DNA of 64,000 nucleotides from Lepidodermella squamata (taxonomy: Eukaryota; Animalia; Gastrotricha), in assembly GCA_047495785.1 (NCBI GenBank), contig JBLDXI010000024.1, forward strand, positions 4,712,001-4,776,000, written 5' to 3'. Shown here in pieces: positions 20,558-52,300 of the stretch. The translations under genes and the position numbers were made by a program. The notes under the pieces were generated by a model. The model worked only from the letters and a program-made list of their open reading frames with translations, made no database searches and was not told the origin of the DNA. Position 1 is the stretch's first letter, and each line of letters opens with the position of its first letter.

Positions 20558-21036
20558 CCGTATTTGTTCCAATAGCAGCCCGGGCTATTAGATTTTCAAC
20601 CCCCAAAAAAGTCCTAAAAAGTGGGCTACTAATAGAGATGGGCGATTATTAGAGATGGGCGATGTGTTAGATGTTACACTGTGTTACACTGGATGTTTTA
20701 TTTGGTCCGAGCCACTCAACAGACCCCTTGAAAACAAAATTCGGCCCCATTTTGTCTTTTACCAACTGCACAGCTTTTGAAGTGTCACTCAAGTTGTGCT
20801 TAAACGAGTACTCGACCACTGAAAGTTTCTCAAGAATTTATTACATTTTGTACCGCATAGGGTATACCGCACAAAAACACGCGACCGCACAGGGGTGCGC
20901 GACACCTAGCAAGCATGTGCAATAGCCCGGGCGATTGTTAGAGATGGGCGATTTGTTTGACCCTGATGCCTTCACATGGGCGACTATTAGAGATGGGCGA
21001 CTATTGGTGAATGGGCTATTATTGGAACAAATACGG
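20558..21036. mobile_element. Tc1/mariner/pogo-type MITE nested in the CACTA-like element
   Basis: TA-CCGTATTTGTTCCAATAGCAGCCC...GGGCTATTATTGGAACAAATACGG-TA, with internal TTAGAGATGGGCGA repeats. Confidence 0.8.
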
Positions 21037-22094
21037 TAAATGTTTCTTTAAAAATAAAATTAACAAATTTGCACGAGGGTGATTGCCCTTTGATTGCCAC
21101 CCAAGAAAAGAATTGCCACAGTTAATTACCACCCAAGGATATTTACCCCAATTTTACCACGGAGCGAATTACCACAAAGGAATAGGCGAGAGCATTTACC
21201 CCTCAAAAAATTGAACAAGGGTAAATACCCGGGGTAATCAACACCCTATTTTTACAGTGTAGTGTTATTTTCTGAGAGCAGATCAATTTTAGAGTATTTT
21301 TTGATAGGGCGGGTGCAGGATTGTCTTCAAGAAAATTGCAACTTTTGCTTGTAAAAAGTATATTTTTGAAAACTTGCTGTCTCAACCACTTCAGCAATTT
21401 ATGCGTTTAACGGATCACGCAATCGAATTCAGCAAAATGTTGTCTCTAAACAATATTACACGCAGTTTTTCTCTACTCTACAAAGGTTTGAGTAATTCCA
21501 GCGTGTATCTGTGAAAACCATGATTTGAAAACGTGTTGTCTTAGCCATTTCATCATTCTTTGATACACGAATTCCGCAACCTAATGATCACAATATATTG
21601 TGGTAAATTCGGTCAATTTAAGATGTTTCAGCTTTCTCAATTTTGACGCTGTAGGGATGAGAATAGGTTCAAGTTGTAGGGAAACCTCGATTTTTATTGT
21701 GTATTTTCAACTGAGAATTAATGCAGCTGTTATCTCAAAGTTCCAGGCATTCGAAATAAATATACCCAAGCGCACTACATGTTTACATTACAATTTCTAT
21801 AAACCTTATTCTTTGATCACGCAAAGATTTGTAACAAAAATGGTTAAAGCATTAGTTCATATAGAGCGTAAGCTCGCGATTTTCTCACTAGCTCCGCTTT
21901 ATGGCGAAAGCTTGAGTCCGTCAGGGCGAGGAGAACTCGTAATTCCTGATCCTGATCCTGATTAGCACAAGCTCTGATGGCGTTGAAATCCCTCGACAAG
22001 CTCACCATCTCAGCTTTCGATTTCGTGTTATTCGCCACGTTAAAATTTAATTTTGGTTCTGCAGCGATTTCAGGCATCGGACCTGTTCACTTAA

Positions 22095-43554: not shown

Positions 43555-43703
43555 GTGCTCTTGTGTTATTCCTCTTTGTGCTTTACACCACTCGAGGAAC
43601 GTCAACCAGAGCATAAATTACATTCATAACCAGTCTCTACGGGTAGCCGATTTAAACTCTTCGGACAAACAAATCGATTATCTACTAAACTCTGGCTACA
43701 TTT
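43555..43703 (+). ncRNA. H/ACA snoRNA, SNORA13/snR35-like (copy 1)
   Basis: Hairpin, H box AAATTA (43615-43620), hairpin, ACA-TTT. The 5' pocket GTGTT/GTCAA is complementary to 18S UUGAC-U-C-AACAC and lies 14 nt from the H box. Confidence 0.82.
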
Positions 43704-44111: not shown

Positions 44112-44252
44112 ATGCTTCGGTGTTACCTGTTCTCGCTGTAAATTAGTCGAGGACATGGTGTCATGAGAAGCACATAGCAAAGTGAAGAGTGTCTACGGGC
44201 AGTTCAATTTTTACTTTTTCACTCAACTGCCAATAATATCTCTGTTACATTT
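44112..44252 (+). ncRNA. H/ACA snoRNA, divergent SNORA13-like
   Basis: TGCTTC..GAAGCA hairpin with a GGTGTT/GTCA pocket 14 nt from H box ATAGCA. Second hairpin GGCAGTT..AACTGCC, then ACA-TTT. Confidence 0.75.
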
Positions 44253-44701
44253 TACATTTGTGTTTCTCTACTCTTTTCACAGATTATCTGGACCAAGAAG
44301 AAGCTCGATGAATGAGAATCCACATATTCGCCCTGATAATTTTCATCTTTATAAGCCTTTATAAGCCCTTGACCTTGTAGTTTTTTCTGGCTTCGTGCTT
44401 TTGTCTTGACGTGACGTATTTTTTGCTCTACACGCGTATAGCACAGGTATAATTCACGTCATTGTTACAAAGGTTTAGCCATATAGTAAGGGCAATTCTT
44501 TTGTGCTGTTTCCTTTTTTTGCCGTACACTAATTTTGGCCAAAATTCCTGCGGCATTAGGGGCCTCGTAACTGAATTCCAATTATTTTCCTTTGGTAGTT
44601 CTCCTAATGCTCAGTTAGTTTTTCTCTCGAAACTTGGCTTTTAACTGGAGGATTTATTTGCTATAGCGGCTTGACAGTTATTTAAATTAAATCTTCGAGA
44701 G

Positions 44702-47700
44702 ATGAAGGCGTTGATTCTGGTCGGTGGTTATGGCACGCGTCTGCGTCCGCTGACCCTGACTAAGCCGAAGCCGCTGGTCGAATTCTGCAACAAGCCGATG
44801 CTGCTTTTCCAAATCGAAGCCCTGGCAGAGGTTAGTTCACGCCAAATTTCGAAAATTTAGGTCAAAATGCCAAAAATTCAGTGACTAAATGAGAAGTAAA
44901 CAAGGTTTTTAATTTGATTGAAATTCTACATTTTTAAATTATTTTGGTGAGCTTAATTCTAGAATTAGAGATTCAACTTTGAGAAAATAACCAAAATTCC
45001 CTTGAATTTCTTTGAAAATTGAAAATTGATGAATCGTAAATCTGAACTGAAATCGAATTCCGACCCTTGTTTCTTGGAATATTTGTCACAGCGGCTCTAT
45101 AAATTCCGGACTTTGCTATATAAATGCAAATTTCGTGCCGTAAGAGCCGTAAATCGAAATCAGACCCGACGCGGGAAAGTGTCGAGGCTGCACGTATAGC
45201 CTAGATTTCGATCTCTACAGCACAGACTAGTCGGTTCTACATTTTCACTCAAAAAATTTCAGGCTGGCGTGAAACTGGTCATTCTCGCCGTTTCCTACAT
45301 GTCCGACATGCTGGAGAACGAGCTGCGCCACGTGGAGAAGGAGCTCGGCATCCGCATTGTCACCTCGCTGGAGAAGGAGCCGCTGGGCACGGCTGGTCCG
45401 TTGGCGCTGGCCTCCGAGCTCCTGCTCGCCGACCCGTCGCCCTTTTTCGTGCTCAACAGCGACGTGATCTGCGACTTCCCGTTCAAGGAAATGATCAAGT
45501 TCCACCAGTCGCACGGCGGCGAGGGCACGATTGTCGTCACCAAAGTGGACGAGCCGTCCAAGTACGGCGTGGTTGTGTACAAGGAAGAGACTGGTCTGAT
45601 CGAGCGATTCGTCGAGAAGCCGCAGGAGTACGTGTCGAACAAGATCAACGCGGGGCTGTACATTTTTTCGACGTCGGTGCTGAAGCGCATCAAGCCCGTG
45701 CCGACGTCGATTGAGAAGGAGATCTTTCCGCAAATGGCTGCTGATAACAAGCTGTTCTGCCTACAACTCAAAGGTTAGATTTACACTTCTTGCTTACTTC
45801 TCAGTCTCAAATTCAAAAATCGAGGAATGATATATTTGTTGAATCTGTCGAATTGTTCAATCAAACAAGGTGCCGCTATTTTTGTTAGCACTGAAAATCG
45901 AAAAAAATCGGAAATTTTTATTTATTTCTGGCAGATGAGAATTTCGAACATTGAAGTAGCTAAAATAGGAATCTCAAAATTAGCTTTATTTCATGGTTAA
46001 ATATTGCATCCCACATTTTGATTCACTTTTACGGTATCGAAAATCGTTGGTGATGAAAAATTTTCCATCGGGAATTGAAAAAAATGAATAAATGAAATAT
46101 TTTTCTCTGAATTTGCTAAAAATCATTCGATAGTAAGAAGTGAGGAGTTCGTCTTCAAATTTAGAATTTGCTATCAAATTTCCTCAAATTTTAGAATTTG
46201 AATACAATCCAAATCCGCAAGCCTTAGCGTTGGGAAATCGTTATATTCGATTATTGATTTATTTTCTTTAAGGGAGTTGAAATGGATTGGAATTCAAGTT
46301 TTTTATTCAAAATCACTATTTTTTGAAAAAATTAAAACATGTCTAAAAATCGAATTGTTTTTCGAAAATTTTCTCCGAAATTTGAAAATTTGCAAAAATT
46401 GAAGCGCTCATCTTGTATGAATTTTGACAATAGTGATTTATCAACGAATATTTTAATTTCTCGATATTTGTGTCGTGCTCTTGTGTTATTCCTCTTTGTG
46501 CTTCTCACCACTCGAGGAACGTCAACCAGAGCATAAATTACATCACAACCAGTCTCTACGGGTAGCCGATTTAAACTCTTCGGACAAACAAATCGATTAT
46601 CTACTAAACTCTGGCTACATTTTACTATTTTTCTTAGGCTTCTGGATGGACGTCGGCCAGCCGAAGGACTACCTCATCGGCACAGCCATGTACCTGGCCT
46701 GGCTGCGCGAACGCAGGCCGCAGGAGTTGTACGCGGGCGAGGGCGTGGTCGGCAACGTCCTCGTCGATTCGACGGCGACCATCGGCAAGAACTGCCGCAT
46801 CGGTCCGAACGTGGTGATTGGGCCGGGCGTGGTCGTCGAGGACGGCGTGTGCCTGAAGCGATGTGCAATTCTCCGCGGATCTCGCATCAAGTCGCACTCG
46901 TGGCTCGATGGCACCATCGTCGGCTGGTCTTCAATCGTCGGTCAATGGGTGAGTCGATTTTTTTTCAAATCGCCTAAAATAAGTAGACCCCTGCTCTGCC
47001 GTTGCAATTCCACCCTACCAACTAACGTTTATCTAACGTGTGCTCGTGCTTTTTAAACACTCTTGTTGTGTGTTTTAATTTTCTATTTATTTTTCGATCC
47101 GTTTGCCGTGGCTCTGTCACTTGATTGCGAGTATATTAACATTTTGAATGTAACGAATGATTCGAAGTTTTCTCACCTGAATGATTATCGTTTAGTTTTG
47201 TTTTATCGCACTTCGATAGCAATTTGGGCTTGTAATTTTAGTAAAATCCCATTTTTCATCCACATAGAACTTTCCATTTTGACATTTGGTCATCCTTTCT
47301 CGTCAGAGATCGAGAACTTATTTTACCCAGTGTGAAGACATTTTTTCGAAGTAATGTTTTAGTTAGCTTTTTTCATTTTCATACTTGCCCTATTTTTCGT
47401 TTAGTATTTCGCCGTTTCATTCTTATTAGCTTGAAAAAAACGAGAATATAATGAAACAGGAGCTATTTCGATTCTACCATGAAATGATGGGATAATATTA
47501 TCCTATGAATATCGATATCATTAGCCCATTAGCATCAGGACCTATATTTTTGCCACTCAATTTTTCAAAATATTTTTTCCATTTTTTAGAAAAAAACTAG
47601 CGCGTAGAATGCAATTATTTTTCTTTTATTCAATTTACCTTTTCTCAGTCCTAATATTCTTATTAGTCTAATATTGAAAATTTCCACCGCAATATTTCAA

Positions 47701-48881
47701 CTTAACCAGAGCCAAAAAGTTAAAGTGGTTAGAGTAGCAGGAATCGTTGCCAATTTTGTTTATAGACGTCCGATCTTGCTAATTTTTGTAGGATTGGCCA
47801 TTAATATTTCGAGTTTTAGAGCTTTAATTGTACGATTTTTTCTTAAGCTTCCCTCTAATTAGCGCGAAATTCCCACGTGATCTCTAACACTTTTTGAACT
47901 AATATTTTTGCCCGTTTCCCCCATTTTAAGGCTCGGTTGTTTGTCTAACTGTTTGAAAGATCTGTTCAATGTGCCTCGTAACACGTGTTTAGCATCCTTT
48001 TCCTCTCACAATAATAACGAGATCTTGTGGTGTGTAAAAATCAAGAACCAAGAAGATGCCGGAGTGGCTTTGATGACATTGATTGACCTGTGTGTGTAAT
48101 TATTGCGGTCGTCTAGGCGCGGCTCGAGAACACGACGGTGCTGGCCGAGGACGTGAATGTCGCCGACGAGATGTACGTCAACGGCGTGCGAGTTCTGCCG
48201 CACAAGTCCATCACCGAGTGCATTGCCCACCCTTCGGTCGTACTCTGAATCATACAAAATCATCATCACATTCATATTGCATCTACCTGAGAAAATCAGA
48301 AGCAAAAAATGTAGTATATGAAATTATTATGTTAAAATAATATTATATATTCTTTCACCGAGAGCGAGTGAGTATGGGGCTGGCCCATTTCTGAACACAC
48401 CATGCATTATATTATTACTATTATTCCTAACTAATTTTTCTATTCGTTCAACAACTTCGACTCTCATTCGACTCGGTTACTATTTTCTGATGAGTGTGAA
48501 ACGATTTTCCCGAATTTCGTGGCCTTCTTATCTATTTATTTGCTTGATCAACTTATATTAATGAAATTATATCCGTGAAAATTCTTTTTTTTACGTGTTT
48601 TTCTATGTGTCTTGATTTTATGATGAGCCTGAAAAATCAATCAATCACTATGCATATAATAATAATTCTAGCCGAAAAAAAGAAACAAATTGTTGTTGAT
48701 TGCGATTGATGATTGTAAAATGTTATTATAATTTGACTACAAAAAACAGGCGCGCCTCAGCGATGCGACGGTGCTGGCCGAGGACGTGTTTGTCAACGAC
48801 GAGATCTGCCTGACGGGCGCCAAGGTCCTGCCGCACAAGGCCATCAGCGAGTCGATCCACGTGCCTCAGGTGATTCTGTGA
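44702..48881 (+). CDS. GMPPB: Mannose-1-phosphate guanylyltransferase beta (exons 44702-44830, 45263-45773, 46638-46948, then 48117-48248 or 48750-48881)
   Basis: [45 protein letters not shown], and a left-handed beta-helix C-terminus with VLPHK. Confidence 0.96.
45090..45244 (+). ncRNA. Candidate H/ACA snoRNA in GMPPB intron 1
   Basis: GCGGCTCT..AGAGCCGT hairpin, AAATCA H-like box, CCGAC..GTCGG hairpin, ACA-TTT near the intron 3' end. Target not identified. Confidence 0.55.
46475..46622 (+). ncRNA. H/ACA snoRNA, SNORA13/snR35-like (copy 2, GMPPB intron 2)
   Basis: Near-identical to 43555-43703, with differences only in the loop and hinge. The flanks are unrelated. Confidence 0.82.
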
Positions 48882-49318
48882 AAAGGCAAAAAAATCGCTG
48901 GAAATAATTCGTCATTACCACGTGAAAAAACTGTGTTATTTATTATTATCTTTATTGCGTTTTTTGGATCGTAATTAATTTAATATTATTATTCTACTAC
49001 GTCGTGTCTTATGTTGTAACATCTCGGCGAGAAAATAAATCCGGATTTTTTCTTGAATTTGTGTTGTGTAGTATATAGACATGGAATTTCGGCGAAGCTG
49101 TGAGAGAACTTTTTCTTCCATTTGTTTTTTTTCGAGTCGATGTTACATTAAGAACTGCTTTTTCTGTTTCACTATGATGTCTGACTGACTTCGAGATATT
49201 ATTATAACGTCATTAAAATTATTTATTATTTCTGCGACGGAGAAAAATGAGCAAATAAAACACGTTTCTGGGTGTTGGTAAACAATTTTTCATTTTTTTG
49301 GTAATTTAATTTTTTAGC

Positions 49319-52300
49319 ATGGTAAAATTGATTTTGTTGCTGTTTTTCGCTGCCGGAGTGGCCGCCCTGGACAACGGCCTGGCCCGCACGCCGCCGATGG
49401 GCTGGCTGTCGTGGCAGCGGTTCCGCTGTGAAATCGACTGTAAAAACTTGCCGGATGACTGCATTTCCGAGAATTTGTACATGGCGATGGCGGACCGGCT
49501 GGTTGCGGATGGCTACCGCGATTTGGGCTACGTCTACGTGAACATCGACGACTGCTGGTCGGAAATGGCGCGCGACAACACAACGAAGCAACTCGTGGCG
49601 GATCATGTTCGCTTTCCGCATGGCATCAAGTGGCTGGCTGATTACATGCACCAGAGGTCCGATTATATTTCATACACATTTTGGTTGAAAAATCTTTTTT
49701 CGGTTAAAAAAATTCAGAAAAAATTGTAAAAATTGGAATTTGAAAAGACAAGATAGGATGAAAATTGCAGATGGCAATAACAATTTTGGAAATTTTCACA
49801 ATATACTTTGATTTTATTGAAAATACTCCAAGGAATTGGAAAATTTCGACATCAAAGTGAAAAATGAGAGTGGGATGGGTCGTTATGGAATGGTAGCGAG
49901 GCCCTTACATTCTGCACTTGAAAATGTTGGGCTTATTAATCCATAGGATCAATCATTTGATTATTCAGATTCTAAGCTATGCTAACAAAAATGATTTTAT
50001 TGCAATAATTGTTTGCACTCGTTAAAACGAAAGAGAGAGAGAGAGAGAGAGAGTTCAGCTGGAGTGTGGTTCCACCAGGCTACCTTTTTTCCGTAGTCTG
50101 ACCCTAGTAAGTTTTTCCGTTCTAAGAAAAGCAGTGGTTTTTTACCGTAGTCGCTACGAAAAATTGTCTGTTCAGGCGTGACTCCTCTTACTTTTATCAG
50201 CTTGCAACGAGTTGAGACATTAAACTACGGAATCGGCGGCTTCAATAACTCGGCTATTCAATTAAAAAGACATAACGCGTTACTCTTGCACCATCATTCG
50301 GTTTTTATTCTTTCGATAATTAAATTCGAAAAATACGGCTCATCAAATCGGCTATGCTAATTACCACAGAACCATCAAATCACGGATCACAGGAATCAAA
50401 TATCATCAAATGAATCAAATACTATATTAAATTAAATGCAGTTCAAAAAGTTTTCCAGAATTAGCAGCTTTTGCTGCGGGAATTGGCGTAATCAACGCTC
50501 TACCAAATTCAGAAGAGCCAGGGACGTTCTTCAACGACGCGAGACGCGCTGATTCGGGAGCACTTTCGGCGTCACTTTCGCTAGTTTTTTGTTTTCCAGG
50601 GGCATGAATATAAGCCTAAAACTTTCCAACAACGCCTTAAAGTCAATCGACGTATCAGCTCTCCACAATCTTGATGGTAAAGACGTCGTGGGAGCTGATT
50701 GCACGCTGATAAGCATTTATAATATTTTGAAATATATTTTGAAATATTTATTTCCATGTTTAAATTAAATTAATTAACAACATTTATCGCAGGAAAACTG
50801 GCTGCTTTTTTGGTTAATTGCATCACGCTCAGACATTGGATACTCGTTGTTTTTTCTGCCGTAGTCTTTACCGTACTTTTACCGTACTTTTACCGTACAA
50901 TTACCGTTGTGCTACGGAAAAACTACGGTTCAAATCGTGTGTAGCTGGAAATTTATTGAACCTCGTCAACGTAAAAAAAAAGAAAAAATCAACAAAATTC
51001 ATTTGTTCAAGCACGCCGCCGCGCCAGCAGCAGTACCACCGTGGAATTTTGACTCGGCAAACGCAACGCTTAGTGCACCTCTTTTGACAATCACAGACGT
51101 AGTATTTTCAAGCTGTAGCTTCGGCATGGTCAGACGCCTGCTGTCGGCCTCGTCATCGCTAGAACTTTCGAGGACTGCCCGTCTTCGGTTTTTCGACGCC
51201 TTCTCCTGGGGTTTCTTCTTGTCATAGGGAATAAAGAGGAGGATACAAGCGAAACACAAAAATTGAAAAAATTGATTTTTCGTAATACTTAATCAACTGC
51301 AACAGTACTTGAATTTGTTAATGATAATTTTATTCAAAATGTTTAGGGGCCTGAAACTGGGCATCTACGCCGATTACGGCCTGTTCACCTGCGGCGGCTA
51401 TCCCGGTTCAATGGGCTACTTCGACATTGACGCCCAGACGTTCGCATCGTGGGACGTCGACTCGGTGAAATTCGACGGTTGCTTCAGCGACGCTTCCACC
51501 GATAAAACCGGCTACCCAGGCTTCGGGGCTGCCCTCAACAAAACCGGCCATCCTATGCTGTACTCGTGCGAATGGCCGCTCTACGAATGGGTCAATGGCG
51601 TCGCGTCCAACTACACAGCTATCGCTCAGACGTGCAATTTGTACCGCAATTTCAACGATGTTGACGATTCGTTCGAGTCGGTGAAATCGATCATCAATCA
51701 TTATGCGGATAATGGCACGTCATTCCTGAATTCGGTGGGTCCCGGCAATTTTCTCGACCCGGACATGATTATCGCGGGCGATTTCGGGCTGTCGTACGAC
51801 CAGCAGAAACTGCAACTCGGCATGTGGGCCATTTTCGCAGCTCCGCTTTACATGTAAGATTCGTTTCTCTATTATGAAGTGAATGCTGAAAAAATTCTAA
51901 AAATCCCGAGAAATATGTTGAGCTTTATTAATTTTCCAAAAAATAAATGAAAAAATTTGCAAAAGCCTACAAAATGTAAAAAACATCCCATCCGTTATCT
52001 GCGATTTCAGCGGAGGAAATTGATATTCAGCTGTCTATGAGGGTAGTAGAAAAATTGGTTAATCTATAGGCTCTGTATAAGGCCCTGCTTTTTCATTTCG
52101 AAAAGCGATTCCATTTTTTTAAATATCAACTTCTGATTTTTTTTAGGTCCAACGATTTGAGAAATATGCGCCCGGAAAGCGTGACTCTGCTGCAGAACAA
52201 GCTGCTGATTGCGATCGACCAGGACCCGCTTGGCACGGCTGGAAGTTTGGCTTATAGGGTAAGAAAACTCTCAGCGTTTTCATCATTGCTGCGTTAATTA

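Follow-up and report, generated by a model that had tools for sequence, protein, structure and literature searches.

Does the GMPPB gene of the gastrotrich Lepidodermella squamata end in two alternative coding segments, how is one or the other chosen, and are both maintained as protein-coding sequence? All protein mannosylation draws on GDP-mannose made by GMPPB (mannose-1-phosphate guanylyltransferase beta), and in humans a defective enzyme leads to muscular dystrophy and myasthenic syndromes. The question was raised by a prediction made from the letters of a 64,000-nt genomic stretch (hereafter the window, to which all coordinates refer unless another contig or locus is named), which proposed that GMPPB carries two duplicated, mutually exclusive last exons. 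We consider it probable that the locus is an expressed GMPPB gene in which one donor is spliced to either of two acceptors and both transcripts share a 3' end, and we infer that the two resulting tails are functional.

An intact GMPPB gene with two copies of its terminal coding segment

The locus is an intact, expressed GMPPB gene (Table 1). Searches were run exon by exon, with the exons left unjoined. Exon 1 carries the pyrophosphorylase signature in the form GGxGxRLxPLx5PK, exon 3 scored 103 bits against the Pfam GMPPB_C family (PF25087), and the two terminal segments, here called 4a and 4b, scored 46.4 and 43.2 bits against the same family, whose cut-off is 39. The best solved match of 4a was human GMPPB residues 319 to 359 (entry 7D72). 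Judging from homologues, the three upstream coding exons plus one terminal segment amount to ~360 residues. The joint between exons 2 and 3 (45773>46638) was found spliced in cDNA contigs with GT..AG borders.

TABLE 1 Features of the GMPPB locus in window coordinates
Feature	Position	Strand	Description
GMPPB coding exon 1	44702-44827 (in-frame part; donor approximate)	+	From tblastn of homologues P0057 and P0067 and the ORF list
GMPPB coding exon 2	45263-45773	+	NTP_transferase catalytic domain (PF00483, E 3.7e-31)
GMPPB coding exon 3	46638-46948	+	End of catalytic domain, linker, first beta-helix coils; shared donor 46948
Intron of 4a form	46949-48116	+	GT..AG; depth 0-10 except in bins with flanking exon bases
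Copy 4a	48117-48248	+	43 codons plus TGA; coding only with the proximal acceptor in use
Spacer	48249-48749	+	29% GC; 3'UTR in the 4a form, intronic in the 4b form
Copy 4b	48750-48881	+	43 codons plus TGA; coding with the distal acceptor, untranslated in the 4a form
Shared 3'UTR	48882-49282	+	AATAAA at 49034 and 49254, ATTAAA at 49212; poly(A) tail at ~49282

Sub-threshold Rfam matches to H/ACA small nucleolar RNAs lay in introns of the gene on the plus strand (43555-43703, 44113-44241, and 46475-46622), with scores of 43.1 and 43.7 bits for snopsi18S-1377 and 40.3 bits for SNORA13; Rfam gave no match in the last long intron (46949-48116) or in the spacer between the copies. A plus-strand gene for a protein resembling GH27 alpha-galactosidase or alpha-N-acetylgalactosaminidase, with a signal peptide, begins at 49319, 37 nt past the GMPPB poly(A) site.

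The original prediction described two 132-nt, phase-0 segments, each with an AG acceptor and its own stop; its positions proved exact and its translations correct letter for letter. Each copy has an AG directly 5' and a terminal TGA, and the phase of both is set by the common donor GG|GTGAGT at 46948/46949. The copies are identical at 93/132 nt (70%), 25 of the 43 residues, and 26 of the 44 codons when the stop is included. Their alignment score lay 17 standard deviations above that of shuffled sequences, and a repeat search of the window recovered them as a direct repeat (48115-48249 and 48748-48882, 71% identity, 633 nt apart). Neither copy contains a stop or an indel and both exceed the family threshold, which bears out the further claim that both are intact despite their divergence. 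The likeness ends at the acceptor AG and 1 base beyond the stop, and flanks of 60 and 150 nt on either side of the copies aligned at the level of shuffled sequence (z = -1.0 to 1.3). Since the likeness ends at the exon borders, the noncoding part of the duplication has decayed past recognition. A search of the whole 121-Mb genome found just these two copies.

Within the repeat, 48133-48155 and 48766-48788 are identical over 23 bases, comprising seven whole codons (...TVLAEDV...) and the two preceding bases, with no synonymous change. Codon bias, local gene conversion, or an exonic splicing signal required for both acceptors might explain this run.

One donor is spliced to two acceptors within a single terminal exon

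The RNA data came from one public run of whole animals (X1, 2015) in the form of short assembled contigs, from which strand, true ends, and reliable levels cannot be read. X1 behaves as cDNA: introns had depths of 0 to 10 and exons of 100 to 750, and its loose ends included SMART-oligo and poly(A) sequence. Both predicted junctions were present in X1 contigs at the exact positions and with GT..AG borders: 46948>48117 at a depth of 198.7 and 46948>48750 at a depth of 153.5, each in one contig with 24 letters on its shorter side. Both forms are thus made, since the shared donor is joined to both acceptors, and the possibility that only one copy is ever spliced, raised together with the original prediction, is answered by depths of ~199 and ~154. 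Contig depths put the ratio of the 4a to the 4b junction at ~57:43.

The copies could be true alternative last exons, each cleaved and polyadenylated at a site of its own, so that 3'-end processing would make the choice. Homologous 3'-terminal exons are usually interpreted in this way (PMC3228551), and RNA ends are invisible in contigs whose loose ends were only partly listed. However, a 472-nt contig (48307-48778) ran unbroken from 3' of the 4a stop into 4b at a depth of 224, no lower than at the 4a junction; a signal scan found neither AATAAA nor ATTAAA between the copies (48249-48749); and the sole poly(A) loose end among those listed, 18 A, lay behind 49282. Because the contig reads through to 4b, the interval between the copies lacks these signals, and poly(A) was found only at ~49282, we conclude that GMPPB uses a choice of acceptor within one terminal exon rather than a pair of last exons that each have an end of their own, and we hold the reading with two cleavage sites to be very unlikely. 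No separate poly(A) site was seen in the contigs, which a minor site may escape. Depth 3' of 48750 was 361 to 533, approximately the sum of both forms.

The tandem pair has the equal length, phase, and homology by which mutually exclusive exons are recognized. Strict mutual exclusivity was nevertheless not found, since the copies lie at the 3' end of the gene and transcripts that use 4a continue through 4b to the common poly(A) site; the description as mutually exclusive last exons is therefore not supported in that wording. What the gene has instead are the marks of an alternative 3' splice site, namely, one donor, two acceptors, and a common 3' end, the last of these as read from contigs. 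The 4a form has a 3'UTR of ~1 kb that holds untranslated 4b; in the 4b form, 4a is removed with the intron and the 3'UTR is ~0.4 kb long.

In X1, the exon 1 region (44564-45219) had nearly no depth, compared with hundreds over the 3' exons. This low depth is probably due to 3' bias of the library, and it may reflect an alternative start.

An assembly artefact, in which a single last exon was placed twice in tandem from different alleles or haplotypes, was also considered. The DNA run X2 does hold two haplotypes, several percent apart in introns. However, 4a and 4b differ at 30% of their bases, far above the haplotype difference; X2 DNA contigs spanning 48047-48591 and 48598-49050 are colinear with the window; and the cDNA contig described above physically links the 4a flank to 4b. 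The chance that the tandem arrangement is artificial is accordingly negligible, and we take the duplication to be real. Variation in X2 comprised no differences within 4a or 4b and a few in the spacer. At 44400-44640, 46261-46502, and 46950-47030, one X2 haplotype matches the window and the other is ~7% different, with small intronic indels. Heterozygosity in the sequenced individual or population is thus very high.

Divergence of the copies argues for selection on both

We compared 4a and 4b with a family reference of 56 distinct orthologous C-termini, in which columns were called conserved at a threshold of at least 80%. The copies agreed with each other at 22 of the 28 conserved columns, compared with 3 of the 15 variable ones (P = 0.0003, Fisher's test), and each copy kept the family residue at 19 or 18 of the conserved columns. 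When changes were polarized by the family majority, 4b alone had changed at five sites and 4a alone at four; the two copies have thus moved away from the family equally fast. GC3 was 0.84 and 0.89 in the two copies and 0.825 in the remainder of the gene, in surroundings of 29 to 35% GC. Differences toward AT and toward GC were balanced (9 versus 11 sites), so AT drift was absent. In a simulation in which 39 random base changes were made, 0.5% of the outcomes kept as many residues without a stop. Neutral decay of one copy fits none of the border, column, rate, GC3, and simulation results, and this pattern argues that both copies are under selection as coding sequence.

Pairwise dN/dS was high, and its estimate depended on the method (NG86, 0.68; LWL85, 0.93; YN00, 0.22), with 43 codons and a GC3 of 0.85 in the comparison. 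Since the 4a/4b differences fall about equally on the three codon positions (12, 12, and 15), the protein appears to have evolved fast after duplication, although the even spread alone would fit relaxed constraint too. As to where the copies have changed, 4b altered the first and middle coils (positions 4, 5, 20, 22, and 31), replacing two almost invariant residues (Tyr20 to Cys and Asn22 to Thr), and kept a tail more canonical than that of 4a; in 4a, the changes are in the free tail (positions 33, 35, 37, 38, 40, and 42), and the coil is still canonical. This complementary divergence would fit two specialized surfaces.

The same values leave room for a reading in which one form matters and the second junction is splicing noise that does no harm, directed at a duplicated segment that is drifting or was only recently released from constraint. 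Pairwise dN/dS of up to ~0.7 to 0.9 and the even distribution over codon positions would be expected on such a segment; in addition, 4b lacks Tyr20 and Asn22, two residues that hardly vary among the 56 orthologues, and the duplication was seen in no other organism examined. Weighed against this are the abundance of both junctions (~57:43), the equal rates of divergence, the avoidance of conserved columns by the changes, and the lack of AT drift, stops, or indels in copies whose flanks have lost all similarity. Given these observations, we regard splicing noise as an unlikely account, and we proceed with two retained coding tails as the preferred one.

The duplication appears to have arisen within the lineage

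Synonymous sites are unsaturated: among the 25 residues common to the copies, 20 use the same codon, compared with 13.4 ± 2.3 expected from codon usage. Both copies also carry several residues seldom found elsewhere in the family (Ala1, Ala10, Ile36, Val41, and Leu43). From these two features, we conclude that the duplication arose within the Lepidodermella squamata lineage and is of middling age.

The comparison with other organisms covered eight genomic loci (Rotaria, Brachionus, Elysia, and five more eukaryotes), each with a single terminal segment. A scan with motifs common to both copies added 54 metagenome loci; all had a single copy, at most 70% identical. The phase-0 last intron, which follows G(Q/R/K/N)W and lies 43 codons before the stop, was in the same position in 8/8 genomic loci. 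The loci that keep this position range from those of rotifers and a mollusc to those of marine eukaryotes whose introns are very short, and the preceding exon of 103 codons has identical borders in most loci, including that of Brachionus. A word search with exon 3 covered proteins of 106 to 337 residues, a range outside which full-length GMPPBs of ~360 residues fall, and its nearest match was 73% identical; a search with an alignment of both copies among proteins of 24 to 75 residues returned no candidate, a blank of little meaning.

In the Elysia marginata GMPPB locus (L070), 21030-21272 holds several tandem degenerate copies of the ~20 last codons of the penultimate coding exon. These partial copies (IKSHSWL...VGNW) lie directly 3' of that exon, and some contain stops. 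They resemble partial duplications of an exon that are now decaying, and they occupy the intron in which Lepidodermella has its duplicated tail.

The two tails may confer different subunit contacts

The original prediction also held that this segment completes the left-handed beta-helix involved in oligomerisation and in the GMPPA/GMPPB complex, and published structures agree. The C-terminus of a Leishmania GDP-MP subunit lies against its neighbour's catalytic signature motif, and the enzyme is inactive upon loss of the last three residues or mutation of the preceding Pro-Asn (PMC9424295). For the human GMPPA-GMPPB complex, the beta-helix is described as the main or sole contact in all three kinds of dimer interface (PMC9168903, citing Zheng et al. 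2021).

The genome was searched for GMPPA, as had been suggested when the duplicated tail was first noted, and a separate GMPPA gene is present on contig C13. Its 376-residue open frame matched human GMPPA (7d72_A) at E = 1.7e-103, compared with 1.1e-32 for the beta subunit, and it has a single last exon. The gene (1230-2493 of the contig C13 locus, minus strand) is nearly intronless, and its GC3 is, by eye, far below that of GMPPB. In its last exon, LPDK replaces the LPHK of the family.

In the account we favour, an old tandem duplication copied the terminal coding segment of GMPPB; as the contigs show, donor 46948 is now spliced to 48117 or 48750, with both transcripts ending near 49282. Both proteins would work as enzymes and would be distinguished by the free tail and last coils of the left-handed beta-helix. 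This region of solved relatives makes dimer contacts and reaches the neighbour's signature loop; we therefore expect both forms to be active but to touch neighbouring subunits differently, and so to differ in assembly. The differing tails could affect self-assembly, pairing with or sensitivity to the inhibitory GMPPA, stability, or activity, and tuning of GDP-mannose synthesis or its feedback by isoform, as originally suggested, would be plausible. The unequal lengths of the 3'UTRs might also allow separate posttranscriptional control. A more specific proposal, which we put forward as speculative and think improbable, is that the tails act as a regulatory switch: one isoform would pair with GMPPA and be sensitive to GDP-mannose, and the other would form homo-oligomers that escape feedback. 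If this were true, one gene would yield a GDP-mannose pyrophosphorylase under regulation and a second one free of it.

Relation to known systems and significance

Homologous alternative terminal exons are already known, and the GMPPB pair adds a case. The last exons of human CAPZB and Drosophila Mhc likewise include a tandem, stop-bearing copy that encodes homologous C-termini of equal length, and there too the downstream copy is untranslated when the upstream copy is used (PMC3228551). Unlike in those genes, the upstream copy in GMPPB is, on the present data, the start of a longer terminal exon and has no donor or poly(A) site of its own. With substitution isoforms produced by tandem duplication, and with mutually exclusive exons (PMC8373072, PMC9741552, PMC9013439), the pair shares equal length, phase, homology, and the one-for-one replacement of a structural element. 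Classical mutually exclusive exons are internal, with one copy per mRNA, whereas the GMPPB pair is terminal and its long mRNA holds both copies. GMPPB also differs from them in having no convincing competing RNA stems: among stems that could loop out 4a, only short AT-rich pairs were found (e.g., 47132-47145 with 48717-48730), and the spacer folded no better than shuffled sequences (z = -1.0).

Single-tail GMPPBs, such as those of human (7D72), Arabidopsis (VTC1, 7X8J), and Leishmania (GDP-MP, 7WHR), have the same domain order and signature motif. Those of animals, fungi, and plants share with Lepidodermella a phase-0 intron 43 codons from the end and a separate GMPPA paralogue; unlike Lepidodermella, all eight genomic and 54 metagenome loci examined have one terminal segment. 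Human GMPPB isoforms of 360 and 387 residues differ by an insertion and not by homologous substitution. We found no description of homologous alternative tails in GMPPB in the literature.

Since the pair belongs to a single invertebrate lineage that has been little studied and its proposed function is conjectural, we attach moderate weight to the finding. It is a clear case of a duplicated terminal exon resolved by acceptor choice with a common 3' end, an arrangement that gene predictors normally miss. The last residues of GMPPB hold the catalytic loop of the neighbouring subunit and sit at the contacts for feedback by GMPPA, and a natural pair of isoforms differing only in this 43-residue tail would be a ready-made experiment on the role of the tail.
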